Below are positions 2,862-34,006 of a stretch of DNA of 64,000 bases, in pieces (the first letter of the stretch is position 1; each line of letters begins with the position of its first letter). Below the pieces are notes generated by a model. The model saw nothing but the letters and a program-made list of their open reading frames with translations, had not been told where the DNA came from and made no database searches. The stretch is from Tetramitus jugosus. Its lineage: Eukaryota; Protista; Heterolobosea. Made by a program: the position numbers and the translations under genes. The stretch is taken from the NCBI GenBank assembly GCA_937625935.1, contig OW569360.1, forward strand, positions 186,001 through 250,000, in the 5' to 3' direction.

Positions 2862-3620
2862 ATGGACCGAAATATAATAACGAGCTCTGGAGCGGCTCAT
2901 GTAGATGCTTATCTCGAATATCGAATGTAAATTACTTTACCAATTAATGTTTATGTTCATCATTTCTGTTCATTAATACGTGTTATCATCATTGATTGAT
3001 TTTGATCATAATTCAGGATTGTAGGAAACAGAGATGGTGGTCATCTCTTGCCTGAACACGAGTATGAAAAGTTGAGGAAAGAGTTCTATGAGAACAGAGA
3101 GAAGAACAACTTCCATTCTGTGGATTATTCTTGGCTAGAAGGAGCACCCAGACCTCGACCTCGTTCAGAAAAGAACAAGCAGTTGAAGAATCAAAGCTCT
3201 ATGAGATTGTACTGTACAGATATTACTCCATTGGGTCTCTTAAACAAGTATGTACGACTATTCATGTGATTGCATCATCAACAACAAATCTTTGACAACA
3301 ACTGCAGAGAACCGTTCTCATCTCTCCCCGAGCCAACTCTGACAGCGAAGAGAGGAACCAGTAGAATGTTGTCAACCCCATCTACATCAAATAGGAACCA
3401 GAATACCACGAGTAATCGTCCAAGCAGAACTGCTGAACATTGTCCACAACCATTGTCCAGAACACAGACAACACCAGACCTGTCTGAAGTGGAGAAACTC
3501 ACTCAAATGCTTAGTGATACCTCTCTGAGTGCAGCTAAAAAGTATGGCATCAAGAAGGAGCTTCAAATGATCAAAGCCAGAGAAATACAACAAAAGAGAA
3601 GGCTCTTGTCGTCCGAATAA
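2862..3620 (+). CDS. FAM221-like N-terminal domain protein, 3 exons: 2862-2926, 3017-3247, 3308-3620
   Basis: Spliced N-terminus GAAHVDAYLEYRMIVGNRDGGHLLPEHEYEKLR resembles the FAM221A N-terminus as recalled. Introns 2927-3016 and 3248-3307 (GT..CAG) join the ORF-track fragments in frame. Confidence 0.65.
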
Positions 3621-16885: not shown

Positions 16886-16969
16886 TGATGAACTCTTGTG
16901 AATGTTGATCAATCGTCACGCACTTGATAATTGTATCGATCAACAATTGTGTGTGTTTTTTTTTTCAGT

Positions 16970-16985
16970 GAGGTCGTTTTTTTTG
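16970..16985 (+). repeat. Left terminal inverted repeat GAGGTCGTTTTTTTTG
   Basis: Exact reverse complement of 20755-20770. Confidence 0.93.
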
Positions 16986-17117
16986 TCACCACAACACATC
17001 ACAAAAAAAAGAAAAATTTGTTCTCACACATCCACCCACCAAAATATTTGAGACAAAATTGCTTCTACCACAAAGGTTGTTTCATTTTGCACAAATAAAA
17101 AAAAAATATACTTTATT

Positions 17118-18239
17118 TCAATTGTACAGTTTTTCACAGTCAATAACAGTGAATTCTGTTATAACATTGAAATCCTTGCTCCTCTCAACACATATCTCAT
17201 GCTCTCCTTCAACGTAGGACAATTTTACATCACCATCAACTATATCCTTTGCTTCAACCACGAGTTCATCAAATGAACTACACACAACTTTCCACTTTTT
17301 CTCATCATATCTTAGAAACAGACATTTCTTTTCCATTTCATTATCCACCTCACCGCAATCTCTCTTGATCAACTTTGTACAAAGTCCAATTAACGCTGCA
17401 TATTCCTTTGTGACATTCATCATTTCTCTTTGATTGCTGGCATAATTGATGTATGATTTGGCCTGTTCCGATGCAATATAGTTGTTTCTAACGATCGATT
17501 CTTCATATCTTTTGTTTCTATTCAATGACTGACTTGAGTCTATAATGTCGTCTGACAATTGTGATGCATCAGTGGCCATAGTCGTTGTACTATAACACAA
17601 CACATTTTCATCTTCGAGCAACATTACAAAGGCTTCGTCCAGCGAAGATTCTAATTCACAGTGCGCTCTCCATTGATCATGTGACCATGGTATGATCTCA
17701 CCCTCACCTTCCACTCCCAATGCATCCTTCAGGGTGTTTAACTCTTTGACTGGCTTTGGTAATTTCGTTGTTTCCTTACCACGTCCAAATATAGACTTCA
17801 ACCAAACAGAGTCAATTTCAGGCGGGAACAGAATATCCTGGATTTTGTTCTCTTTCGTCTTTGTACCTCTCCAGTTCAGAGTAGCGAGTGCAACGGCTTT
17901 GTTGTTGATCATCAATACAATTTCATCCCCAACATCAACATCATCTGTTTCATTGTTGATCGTCTTTCTCCATGAAGAAAAGGCAGATGATATCTTTTTC
18001 TTGTAATCACTGGCGTCTCTCTCAGGATATCCTTTTTTTATCATCTCTTCGCCAATTCGAAACGTATGATCCTTCACAACGGCTCTAATAGCGGCTTCAA
18101 CTTCCGAGTTGGTGTAATTGGGTCCTCTTTTTCTTTTTTCTTCTTGTGGAGACTGGATCGTTGATTGTCTTTTCGAAGAACTCTTAGATGGTGTGTTGTT
18201 CTTCTCCTTCGCTTTCTCCTTGGTCTTCCCTTTGGTCAT
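17118..18239 (-). CDS. Transposon ORF2: Myb/SANT-like DNA-binding protein with possible C-terminal PB1-like domain
   Basis: Basic NLS then KRKRGPNYTNSEVEAAIRAV, typical of Harbinger Myb-like partners; lies within the TIRs and overlaps the transposase 3' end by 56 nt. Confidence 0.65.
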   Translation of the reverse strand: MTKGKTKEKAKEKNNTPSKSSSKRQSTIQSPQEEKRKRGPNYTNSEVEAAIRAVVKDHTFRIGEEMIKKGYPERDASDYKKKISSAFSSWRKTINNETDDVDVGDEIVLMINNKAVALATLNWRGTKTKENKIQDILFPPEIDSVWLKSIFGRGKETTKLPKPVKELNTLKDALGVEGEGEIIPWSHDQWRAHCELESSLDEAFVMLLEDENVLCYSTTTMATDASQLSDDIIDSSQSLNRNKRYEESIVRNNYIASEQAKSYINYASNQREMMNVTKEYAALIGLCTKLIKRDCGEVDNEMEKKCLFLRYDEKKWKVVCSSFDELVVEAKDIVDGDVKLSYVEGEHEICVERSKDFNVITEFTVIDCEKLYN

Positions 18240-19563
18240 CTGTTGTTGTTATAGTTGTTAGAAGAGGTGTTGTTGTTGTTTGATTTTCACAAACTCGGGA
18301 GAACTTTTGTCGGAGGTGCTCATCAAAATTCGAAACAGATTCGGGGGTCCGAATCGGATGTTGTTGTAAAAATCGATTCGTCAGACAGGCACAAACCATT
18401 GCTACAACTGGTAATAGTGCGATATTATAGCGGAACCGGGATGCTAAAATCTCATATCGCTTGATAAATCCGATTGTGCACTCGACAATGACGCGTTCAA
18501 CTTTTTGGAAATGTTGAAGGGCATCGTCCTCCTTCAAATCATCAGGTGTCACCAATGACAACCCAAGATTCTTTGAGCGAAATCCTCCATCAGCACAAAG
18601 TTTTTTTCCTTCTGGCAACAGAGATATAACGTTGGATAATGAAAAGATTAGTTGATCATTGGATGCGCCACGATAACCAACAGACATGTGAATAATATTA
18701 CCACATCGGTCAACAGTGATTTGACCAATGATGGCATGACCCTTATCTTTCCGATAATACCGACTTTGGTCATACCTTGTTCGACCAATCTTGAAATGTG
18801 AGTGATCCACAGATCCCACTGTGTCAAGAAGGGGATGCGGACTGTTCCAACTCTGTGGAATTGTAATGTTGTCCTTTTCAGTAACAAAAATAGCCATGAG
18901 TACATGACGGAAATCGTTACTTATAGCTGCTTTGGAGTAACCAAAGTTAACTTCAATGACTGAAAGTTTACAAGATTGCCTAAGGATCATTAGGCAAGCT
19001 AGTAGTCGATTGGCAGGTGATAGTCTGTTAGTATATGGTTTCTTTCTCTTGGATTGAATGGACTGTGATAAAAAATGAGCATTTTTTGGTGCCATTATTT
19101 TCTCTCTTGTTCGAGTCAGAAGGTCCAAGAAGTCCTGGTGAGACATGCCAGTGTATGGAACAAATTGCTCTGGTGTTTTGCTCAAAATGGCATAGAAGTC
19201 ATTTCGATTGATTGATTTCTTTCTTTTTCTTAAGAAGGAATTACCTTTACCGATTCCTGGTAATGTTGCCTTTTGAAATAACTTCTTTACTTTATTGTTT
19301 GGATGCGGTAGTTGAATTAGAAGCGGTGGGGGTGATCTTGATAGAATGTTAAGAATGTAATTGGTATTTTTTGGTAGTGTTTGTTTGTGTTGTTGTAGTT
19401 GTTGAAGTATCTGTCGTAGATGTTTCATATCTTGTGATAATAAGTGAAGTTGTGATGATATAATTGTGTCAATATGAATGGGTTCGATGAATAAACAGTT
19501 TGATGTGAGTGGTGGTGGTGGTATGTGTATGAGTATCTTCTCCCATGTTGTTATGCTCTTCAT
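18184..19563 (-). CDS. PIF/Harbinger-type DDE transposase (HTH + DDE_Tnp_4)
   Basis: FVPYTGMSHQDF, HTH (LSPANRLLACLMILRQ..FGYSKAAIS), GSVDHSH (D), GASNDQ, CADGGF (D), RVIVECTIGFIKR (E); no stops. Confidence 0.92.
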   Translation of the reverse strand: MKSITTWEKILIHIPPPPLTSNCLFIEPIHIDTIISSQLHLLSQDMKHLRQILQQLQQHKQTLPKNTNYILNILSRSPPPLLIQLPHPNNKVKKLFQKATLPGIGKGNSFLRKRKKSINRNDFYAILSKTPEQFVPYTGMSHQDFLDLLTRTREKIMAPKNAHFLSQSIQSKRKKPYTNRLSPANRLLACLMILRQSCKLSVIEVNFGYSKAAISNDFRHVLMAIFVTEKDNITIPQSWNSPHPLLDTVGSVDHSHFKIGRTRYDQSRYYRKDKGHAIIGQITVDRCGNIIHMSVGYRGASNDQLIFSLSNVISLLPEGKKLCADGGFRSKNLGLSLVTPDDLKEDDALQHFQKVERVIVECTIGFIKRYEILASRFRYNIALLPVVAMVCACLTNRFLQQHPIRTPESVSNFDEHLRQKFSRVCENQTTTTPLLTTITTTDDQREDQGESEGEEQHTI

Positions 19564-19636
19564 TTTTTGATGGTCTTAATTTTTAGATTCTCCGTTGGAC
19601 GATCCAATTTCTCCGATTTCCGAGCAAAATCACAAA

Positions 19637-20281
19637 ATGTCTGCACCTGCAGTGCCACAACCTGTTCATAACAACAATGGTGAGAACAGAGAAAGATCAG
19701 ATGAGGAGATCAACATGATCAACCTCATCTGCGAACAGTTTATTACAAACATGCAGAGGTATTGTAATATAGGTGTTGGTATTACTCTGTATTCAGAGTC
19801 TCCAGCATTTTATAATGTTAGCTGGTCAACGGCAGGTCAGAACCGTCAACACAAATACCCACTTCTTAAGTTGCGTGATATTGCCCCACTTGATTATGAC
19901 GAAGATACCAACATCATCGTTTCGGTGGAAAGCGCAAAAAAATTTTTGACCAGCGCACTGAGTGATGGGGCCTCATCCAGCCGCGACTTGAGAATTTTTA
20001 TGGCGGTTAAATTTTTGGAAAACAACGGTTACGAACCATCGAACTTTATCGATTTGAATCGATATTGGGCACTGTGTCAATATCATTCGTTTTGTTCTCA
20101 TATCAATCAGTTGATCCTTGGTTGTTCGATTGGTAATCCAGGTACGTTTTTTTTTACTAAAGTGTCAGCATCTGTTTATGTCAAGTATTATCGAGAAAGG
20201 GTCGTTGGTGATGATGGTTCCTTCGTTGACCCTGTGATAAGAGAGATTGTGTTGATGATCAAGAATCATAATAATATATAA
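19637..20281 (+). CDS. Transposon-borne orphan ORF3 (about 214 aa), unknown function
   Basis: Open, complex-composition ORF inside the TIRs, divergent from the transposase; stop overlaps AATAAA. Confidence 0.7.
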   Translation: MSAPAVPQPVHNNNGENRERSDEEINMINLICEQFITNMQRYCNIGVGITLYSESPAFYNVSWSTAGQNRQHKYPLLKLRDIAPLDYDEDTNIIVSVESAKKFLTSALSDGASSSRDLRIFMAVKFLENNGYEPSNFIDLNRYWALCQYHSFCSHINQLILGCSIGNPGTFFFTKVSASVYVKYYRERVVGDDGSFVDPVIREIVLMIKNHNNI

Positions 20282-20754
20282 TAAAGTTTCTGTTTATTGT
20301 TTAAAAATTTTGGTAGTCCAACAATGTTCATGATGGAGGAACGAATGCCTCGCTTGTTGTCGATGATATCTTTGTTTCAACAATGACACCCGTGATTTCT
20401 TCTCCAATTGATTGACTAATTCTTTTCTTGAAGAGATTTTGGTGTTGATGTTGATGATTCTTGTTGTTGTTGACAATAATCACCAATTTCAAAAACCGTT
20501 TTGGAGGAAATGGTTGGTGTTGTATGGAATGATGATGGTGATGATGAAAAGCAATCATGGTCATAGTTGCTTTTTTTGGATCATGTTGTTGGAGGCTGAA
20601 CGATGAGGATTTTCATATTGTGAATCATGATATGTAATATGTGATGATTGTGTGCTGTTTGTTTGTGTTTGGTTGTGTTTGGGTTGGTGAAAATGAAACG
20701 GTGTTTGGGTGTGACTCAAATGCCACACAAATTTTTAATTTTGTGTTGCCACAT

Positions 20755-20770
20755 CAAAAAAAACGACCTC
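20755..20770 (-). repeat. Right terminal inverted repeat CAAAAAAAACGACCTC
   Basis: Exact reverse complement of 16970-16985. Confidence 0.93.
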
Positions 20771-20883
20771 AGTGCGATGATTCAATCGAAAGAAGAATTG
20801 GGGGAGATTCTGCGCTCCGCTTCTCTTCTTTGTGCACAACTGCACAACACAAACAACAACAACCATCACCAAGCATCACAAGC

Positions 20884-32657: not shown

Positions 32658-32887
32658 TGTTGTTTGGTGTTGTTTGGTTTTTTGAATTGTGGTGGTGTGA
32701 ATTTGCCCGAAAACAACGGACAAATCATGACTCACCAGATTCGAGTGACACTCTCCCATAGACTCTTTCTGAAGGCGACCGACTCGGTCTGACATTTCCT
32801 TGACTGCTGCTATATTCATATTCTCTTTTCATTCACATGTGAGTTCTTTCTTCTTTTGAATGACAACAGTCAGCCAAACCAAACAAC

Positions 32888-34006
32888 GAGGGTCAACCCC
32901 CCGAAATAAACTTGACCAAACCATGTCCCCGATTTAACCCCGAATTTTTTCACTGCCTGAACCACTTTTTGTATTGCTTCAAACTTGGTTTTACAAACAA
33001 TACCACCACCATAAGCAAAACCAATAATACAATGACCCTGTCATATCGTGACATTCGTGAAGCCGTCGAGCAAAAAGTTCGCAAAGCAACGGTTGATATT
33101 TTGGTCAGCTACCTCCTTCGCCATTCGGTTCATCTCGGGGGTCATGAGCAACCGAAACACTTTCTTCGGCGTACAGTGTATCTACAACTATACAAGGATG
33201 CGTACCATATTGGTTTCTCCGAGTTATCGAAGGCAACAAAAGGTTGGTACAAGGTCAACCATAAAACTCTTGACAGAAACATCAAAAAGGTAAGAAAAGG
33301 ACTGAACACCTGGGGTAGGAGTCAAGTCACTCCTGGGACTATTTCTGACTGGGAAAAGGCAACAAAGAAAGTCAAAATTCCGAGAGCGGTCGGAGGGACC
33401 ACTCTTTGGATCGATTCGACAGATTGTCAAATTGAGAGAAGAGGAGAGGCACTCAAGAGGCATCCCTTGTATAGTGGTAAACTAAAGAAGGTAGCTCTGC
33501 GAAGAATGGTCATCACTGATGGCAGACGGAGAATTAGATTCTTCTCGGATGGATACACACCAAAGCTGTATGATTCACACTGGGCGAAGGTAAACAAGAG
33601 AATTCTTGATGAAAACTTCAGTGGTGGTGTGTTTATTGGTGACACACACTTCCAGAGGTTCGAACATGAGACTGGATTGAAGTGCTACACACCAATCACG
33701 ATTCCTGTTGGTCGCACTAAGAAGGACAATCCCCTCAGTCAAGGTCAAGAAGAATATAATGCCAAACAGAGAAGTGTGAGAGCCATTTGTGAAGCCACCT
33801 TCGGGGAAATTAAAACAAAGTTCAAGAGTCTCACCACAGCATGGGCTGAAAGTGAACACCAACAAGATTACCTGTTTTCCATTGCTTGTGGAATACACAA
33901 CGTTGAGCTCTAACGGGAAGCTCAGTTGTTGTTGTTGTATGAAAAGAATTGAAAAGATGTTTTGTGTAGGTGGTTTTCCCGCTTTTTTTTTAGGGGGCTG
34001 ACCCTC
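32888..34006 (+). mobile_element. Compact single-ORF IS5/Harbinger-like insertion element, 1,119 bp
   Basis: Imperfect TIRs GAGGGTCAaCCCCC and GAGGGTCAgCCCCC (13/14); AAC on both flanks (32885-32887 and 34007-34009); internal transposase. Confidence 0.85.
33032..33913 (+). CDS. IS5/DDE_Tnp_4-type transposase (about 293 aa)
   Basis: WIDSTD (D), YSGKLK, LYDSH, IGDTHF (D), YNAKQRSVRAICEATFGEIK (E) and ACGIHN. Confidence 0.85.
   Translation: MTLSYRDIREAVEQKVRKATVDILVSYLLRHSVHLGGHEQPKHFLRRTVYLQLYKDAYHIGFSELSKATKGWYKVNHKTLDRNIKKVRKGLNTWGRSQVTPGTISDWEKATKKVKIPRAVGGTTLWIDSTDCQIERRGEALKRHPLYSGKLKKVALRRMVITDGRRRIRFFSDGYTPKLYDSHWAKVNKRILDENFSGGVFIGDTHFQRFEHETGLKCYTPITIPVGRTKKDNPLSQGQEEYNAKQRSVRAICEATFGEIKTKFKSLTTAWAESEHQQDYLFSIACGIHNVEL

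Follow-up and report, generated by a model that had tools for sequence, protein, structure and literature searches.

Whether a transposase and the gene directly downstream of it are translated as two proteins or joined by splicing into one is the question raised by a transposon within a 64,000-nt stretch of the Tetramitus jugosus genome (contig OW569360.1; the whole stretch is referred to as the window). An earlier note, made from the sequence of the window, had predicted that a 55-nt intron on the minus strand fuses a Harbinger transposase in frame to a Myb-like partner, and had suggested a single-chain transposase or a splicing switch controlling transposition. The locus was therefore compared with related elements and with splice, start and polyadenylation signals of the host. 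Coordinates of all features are compiled in Table 1.

Table 1. Features of the transposon and its gene junction (positions within the window).
Feature	Position	Strand	Basis or remark
PHIS-superfamily (Pangu-like) DNA transposon, complete, 3,801 bp	16970..20770	.	TIRs and AGT duplication
Left target-site duplication, AGT	16967..16969	+	
Right target-site duplication, AGT	20771..20773	+	ATT/ATT in copy C39, ATT in relative L053
Left TIR, 16 bp, perfect, GAGG at start	16970..16985	+	
Right TIR	20755..20770	-	
ORF1, 459-aa DDE transposase	18184..19563	-	PF13359, E=7e-17
Internal AATAAA in transposase ORF (Asn-Lys codons)	19291..19296	-	Common to window, C39, C40 and L050
55-nt candidate intron; read as transposase codons 424-441 and A/C-rich ORF2 leader	18240..18294	-	
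CTAAC branch-like motif, in 27-nt segment missing from C39	18257..18261	-	
56-nt overlap coding in two frames: frame 0 for the transposase tail, +1 for ORF2 codons 1-19	18184..18239	-	
ORF2, 373-aa partner, own ATG	17118..18239	-	+1 frame relative to ORF1
ORF2 three-helix Myb/SANT/trihelix-like domain, aa 42-99	17943..18116	-	AlphaFold pLDDT 83
ORF2 beta-strand-rich middle domain, aa ~106-192	17664..17924	-	Model; DUF8039 match in two relatives
ORF2 70-residue helix, probable coiled coil, aa 225-294	17358..17567	-	Model
ORF2 C-terminal PB1/CIDE-N-like beta-grasp domain, aa 300-373	17121..17342	-	Model
AATAAA directly after ORF2 stop; sole one downstream of transposase stop	17112..17117	-	
ORF3, 214-aa orphan	19637..20281	+	Divergent from transposase; present in tandem subfamily

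The Element Is an Intact Pangu-Like Transposon

The two genes reside in an intact element that spans approximately 3.8 kb, contains three ORFs and is flanked by a CMTR2-like gene on one side and a methyltransferase gene on the other. The surrounding contig has the appearance of a gene-dense protist chromosome rather than of human DNA. Placement of the element in the PHIS superfamily is based on an IS5/Harbinger-type DDE transposase (PF13359) whose triad is intact, accompanied by TIRs and a short duplication. The duplication follows the pattern ANT, namely AGT/AGT in the window, ATT/ATT in copy C39, ATT in L053, C41 and C35, and AAT in C40; two damaged element ends deviate from it. The TWA duplication, hallmark of PIF/Harbinger sensu stricto, was absent, AGT being found here and ATT or AAT at other ends. 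An ANT duplication defines the Pangu group, whereas TWA is made by PIF/Harbinger proper (Han et al. 2015, PMC4482050); Pangu corresponds to Repbase Harbinger2 according to PMC12730594. The element is therefore classed as Pangu-like PHIS, assigned by its ANT duplication rather than by a tree, and not as a TWA-type Harbinger. Under the 3-bp duplication the TIR starts with GAGG, and the complete relative L053 likewise starts ATT-GAGG; a 5-bp CANTG reading, under which the TIR would start with AGG, fits some ends only. No empty insertion site was seen among the copies compared.

Shared with Pangu elements (PMC4482050) are the ANT duplication, a 16-bp TIR within the 11-40 bp of the group, a size of about 3.5-3.8 kb, and a DDE transposase accompanied by a second ORF without sequence-detectable motif. 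In contrast to them, the TIR begins with GA (Pangu TIRs usually with AG or GG), three ORFs occupy 3.8 kb (Pangu: two ORFs, ~3.5 kb, a layout approached by the two-ORF, 3.64-kb relative L053), the host is a protist outside the species listed in PMC4482050, the partner carries a PB1/CIDE-N-like C-terminal fold, and ORF1 and ORF2 share a dual-coding overlap. With Ping/Pong and Harbinger3_DR (PMC2836001) the element has in common a PF13359 DDE transposase with HTH region, the two-protein composition and a separate partner with a Myb-like helix bundle, the latter predicted here by a structural model. It differs from PIF/Harbinger sensu stricto in its ANT instead of TWA duplication, in additional partner domains and in a partner lacking a Pfam-detectable Myb/SANT/MADF domain.

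At least 10 contigs carry related copies. In the genome, which comprises 26.35 Mb on 56 contigs, no near-identical copy exists, the nearest being C39 at 81%, and a metagenome scan using the transposase alignment gave no match. A second PF13359 transposase ORF, belonging to a different family, lies at 32864-33913 (+) of the window, with no adjoining partner ORF identified. Moreover, a younger 2.6-kb PHIS family is represented in this genome by three copies of 98-99.8% identity (L040:3522-6131, also L041 and L042), in which a transposase and a 333-aa partner are arranged head-to-head with few bases between them. At L066:302-2302 (-), in a host of 23% GC, a related transposase with an N-terminal Ulp1/C48 peptidase domain (PF02902, E=1e-5) represents a natural protease-transposase fusion. 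A lone divergent ORF2-like gene with no nearby transposase match (L036:2636-3295 (-), on C28) is a candidate domesticated or relic copy. Furthermore, an identical short foreign sequence adjoins two degenerate copies (L069:130-160 and the right end of L051) and probably stems from a further mobile element that entered each of them.

Proteins Encoded by the Element

The catalytic triad of ORF1, D253/D325/E361, is intact and invariant across the transposase alignment; the protein furthermore carries an HTH_Tnp_4-like region and a C-terminal tail that is Thr-rich and then acidic. ORF3 is conserved in copies and in L050, showed no Pfam family and no Atlas match, and has two homologues among the sequences searched; a homologue of 25-28% identity (G000:C1:6123-6734) lies beside a 746-aa ORF.

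The N-terminus of ORF2 is basic and probably disordered. Its ATG is retained in every intact copy and has C at position -3, a weak start context in this host. Pfam and PDB sequence searches with ORF2 gave no significant result; modelling and fold comparison were performed on aa 42-373 (mean pLDDT 79). The three-helix model yielded weak fold matches at Z 5.6-6.3, namely GT-1 (6.3), the Cdc5 Myb domain (6.0) and the DMAP1 SANT domain (5.8), and other HTH proteins match it equally well. Hence the 'Myb-like' label of the earlier note is backed by these weak fold matches, no Pfam Myb match having been obtained, and is kept here as a tentative, purely structural designation. For the predicted C-terminal domain, Foldseek returned the NBR1 PB1 domain (E=8.6e-4), and structural comparison using VIA gave Z 9-10.7 at an rmsd of about 2. 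This PB1/CIDE-N-like domain is also conserved in the partners of head-to-head relatives. No literature report of a PHIS partner ending in such a domain was found.

The 55-nt Stretch Carries Host-Compatible Splice Signals

The individual signals described in the earlier note were all located on the minus strand as predicted. The donor GTTTGT starts at 18294, directly after transposase codon 423 (QKFSR); the branch A of CTAAC is 18 nt from the 3' end of the 55-nt stretch; and the acceptor CAG, within ACAG, has its last base at 18240, immediately ahead of the ORF2 ATG. Between the donor and this AG at +55 no other AG occurs. Likewise, ORF arithmetic verified that removal of the 55 nt joins the reading frames (423 + 373 = 796 aa) and that the unspliced transposase has 459 aa. 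The donor hexamer also represents the codon pair GTT-TGT (Val-Cys), of which a second, in-phase occurrence is found at 18396.

Host splice signals were compiled from the window together with some 200 kb of loci. That GTTTGT truly serves as a donor in this host is shown by the SEN1-like gene, whose Pfam AAA_11 domain splits at profile positions 30/31 across a 93-nt intron (63101-63009) beginning with this hexamer, as the earlier note had stated. Its further statement that host introns can be as short as 60 nt corresponds to one tentative candidate (3248-3307), similarly A/C-rich and AG-free. The 24 homology-bracketed host introns, deduced from split Ras and UBC matches, are ~77-361 nt long (median 178), although bracketing could miss very short in-frame introns; the 55-nt stretch is shorter than all 24. 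Unfiltered joining of ORFs was discarded as a way of finding host introns owing to excessive noise.

The combination of donor, AG-free run and AG near the ATG occurred at none of 57 host gene starts, with a donor-like hexamer 40-130 nt upstream of the ATG at 7 of the 57. An AG-poor, A/C-rich leader is also common to relatives lacking the donor. By rough estimate, the signal set would arise by chance with a frequency of a few per cent per junction, corresponding to 15-20% over four or five tandem lineages. Since the signals are real, host-compatible and in frame, splicing could take place in the window copy. Among the five sequencing runs listed as containing the stretch, none is recorded as RNA.

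The Junction Differs between Relatives

Conservation of donor, branch motif and acceptor across copies, on which the earlier note had made its proposal depend, was not observed among the 13 related junctions or layouts compared. The donor is present only in the window copy and in C39. Copy C39 retained GTTTGT and YAG|ATG, with a gap of 28 nt and no CTAAC; the 27 nt missing from it lie between two AACAAC repeats. As C39 carries frameshifts, the 27-nt loss may post-date its decay. All six tandem relatives C40, C11, L050, L051, C37 and L065 are devoid of the donor. The closest donor-less subfamily (C40, C11 and L050; 83-85% identical in the catalytic core) kept a similar overlap, 29-32 nt long in C11 and L050, and shows neither a GT at the donor site nor any host-type donor with an in-frame first AG. 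L051 features a TAATG stop-start; in C37 and L065 the transposase stops 10 and 15 nt before the ORF2 ATG, with neither donor nor acceptor; and L069 shares the Thr-rich tail and has no AG ahead of the ATG. In L053, L066, L067 and L070 the same two proteins are encoded head-to-head, which makes a fusion impossible there. An in-frame join of ORF1 and ORF2 in C4 was rejected as evidence for fusion, since it results from a deletion in this decayed copy and carries a stop where the two ORFs meet.

Accordingly, the two genes are head-to-head, tandem or overlapping depending on the lineage and, judged from these sequences, fusion is not a family trait. None of the matches was a homologue of fused length: the 21 ORF2 homologues do not exceed 459 aa, a comparison in which unspliced gene calls could not show a fused product. 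Spacer lengths of 55, 28, 31 and 25 nt all preserve the transposase frame, and 3n changes are expected anyway from (ACA)n slippage. As the tree does not resolve the window/C39 fork, no succession of events is proposed.

Substitutions Follow the Unspliced Transposase Frame

The window copy and C39 diverged under purifying selection, with third-position changes of 27% in ORF1 and 37% in ORF2. Within the overlap, all 17 ORF2 third positions are unchanged, against a rate of 37% for the ORF2 body (binomial P=4e-4; Fisher P=0.014); of the four differences, three occur at third positions of transposase codons. The test covers this one pair and its four differences, compared on either side of places 18119-18156. 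Sorted by position in the transposase codon, the alignable nucleotides of the 55-nt stretch had changed at 0/10, 1/9 and 2/9 sites. The transposase tail that splicing would discard thus appears, on small numbers, to behave as coding sequence. As the overlap evolves in the unspliced transposase frame, the 459-aa protein is deduced to be under selection. The 27 nt next to the overlap are conserved as well (2/27 changed), and regulatory constraint could therefore contribute to the conservation of the overlap.

Polyadenylation Signals and Transcript Ends

AATAAA was recognised as the host poly(A) signal, occurring at 22 of 64 ORF ends (-5 to +25) versus 0 of 64 in every one of four coding windows; roughly one host ORF end in two has no AATAAA nearby. 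Host stop codons are often embedded in the signal (9 of 64 ORF ends at offset -2; window and loci). In each of the six tandem relatives without the donor, AATAAA occurs between -2 and +11 of the transposase stop. In contrast, the donor-bearing window copy and C39 have none at this stop and none until the ORF2 stop. In the absence of AATAAA before 17117, the transposase transcript may run through ORF2, and the splice would then be physically possible. The AATAAA inside the transposase ORF is a possible premature poly(A) site, which could shorten transcripts and damp transposase expression.

Separate Proteins or a Spliced Fusion

Because the relatives are unfused and in view of the mutation pattern, transposase and partner are most probably made as separate proteins from overlapping genes of a two-component cut-and-paste transposon (probability roughly 0.65), leaving the window/C39 sub-lineage as the only place where a fusion may occur. 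According to this reading, the 55 nt would be transposase coding sequence doubling as the A/C-rich 5' leader of the ORF2 mRNA, and the donor would be a by-product of the Val-Cys codon pair. The ORF2 mRNA would start inside the 3' end of the transposase gene at a putative internal promoter; for the GAAAAY promoter motif, which was looked for upstream of ORF2, host leaders showed 8 versus 4 expected. The transposase mRNA of the window copy would end at a non-canonical signal or continue to the shared AATAAA at 17117. ORF2 would enter the nucleus via its basic N-terminus, bind the element ends with its Myb-like helices, oligomerise through the coiled coil and the PB1/CIDE-N domain, as its fold suggests, and recruit the 459-aa DDE transposase, which would cut and insert at ANT. 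In Ping/Pong and Harbinger3_DR, the element ends are bound by a Myb-type protein, distinct from the transposase, that brings the transposase into position (PMC2836001); internal promoter, DNA binding and recruitment are proposed here by analogy with these systems.

A functional splice fusion or switch specific to the sub-lineage appears unlikely. It assumes that a donor arose in the window/C39 sub-lineage, where the transposase tail also became an intron and the poly(A) signal of the transposase disappeared. Some of the read-through transcript would then be spliced to encode a 796-aa transposase-Myb-PB1 chain, with the unspliced form providing the 459-aa enzyme, and a single-chain protein would exist beside two separate ones. 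Such a scenario would account for the host-validated donor, the branch-like motif and the first-AG acceptor in the correct frame, a set which matches host introns well and is mimicked at none of the 57 host gene starts, as well as for GTTTGT and YAG|ATG being kept in C39; moreover, the weak start context of ORF2 (C at -3) counts against separate proteins. Presence of the donor also coincides fully with absence of AATAAA (2/2 versus 0/6 copies), but this correlation reflects a single evolutionary event and, with about half of host ORF ends devoid of AATAAA, adds only modestly to the odds of fusion. The retention of GT and AG by a single 81% copy does not reach significance, the C39 gap measures 28 nt and contains no CTAAC, L069 lacks an AG ahead of the ATG, the unspliced frame is under selection, and elsewhere the family works unfused. 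What stands of the proposed single-chain transposase or switch is hence the host-compatibility of its signals and the missing AATAAA, opposed by unfused relatives and the apparent selection on the unspliced tail. The nearest precedent found is Anopheles APLG1-APM1 (PMC9710019), where a PIF transposase and a MADF gene are annotated as one transcript; that is a domesticated gene pair, whereas the splice signals here are unconserved and known from sequence alone. CACTA/En-Spm elements (PMC2836001) provide a precedent for alternative splicing of transposon proteins in a different superfamily. No description of a spliced single-chain PHIS transposase was found in a limited literature search.

Doubtful, too, is leaky, non-adaptive splicing, by which the stretch would occasionally be removed just because it happens to fit host rules, any fusion being noise. 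Signals of host type on a transcript that necessarily runs across the site, and their lack of conservation, would be compatible with it, but the stretch is as short as the shortest host introns or shorter. Translational coupling on a bicistronic mRNA, in which re-initiation or a +1 frameshift would yield ORF2 or a fusion without splicing, is regarded as highly improbable. In its favour, stop and start codons lie close together in every tandem relative (TAATG in L051, gaps of 10 and 15 nt, overlaps of 29-56 nt), and the window copy has a single downstream AATAAA; however, the offset between the two frames is not constant (0, +1, +2), relatives without the donor possess an AATAAA of their own, folding predicted no stable RNA structure at the ORF1/ORF2 junction (z = +0.67), and head-to-head relatives need no coupling.

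Implications for the PHIS Superfamily

The fusion claim is currently disfavoured. If true, it would represent, to judge from a limited literature search, the first single-chain PHIS transposase known from nature and a two-component transposon caught becoming one-component; it would allow testing why two proteins are required in the PHIS superfamily, and a compact transposon tool consisting of one gene would become available. The likelier reading, separate proteins from overlapping genes, is of smaller value: it adds an intact Pangu-like family in a protist, with a partner predicted to carry an unexpected PB1/CIDE-N-like domain, a two-gene layout that varies between lineages and an orphan third gene.
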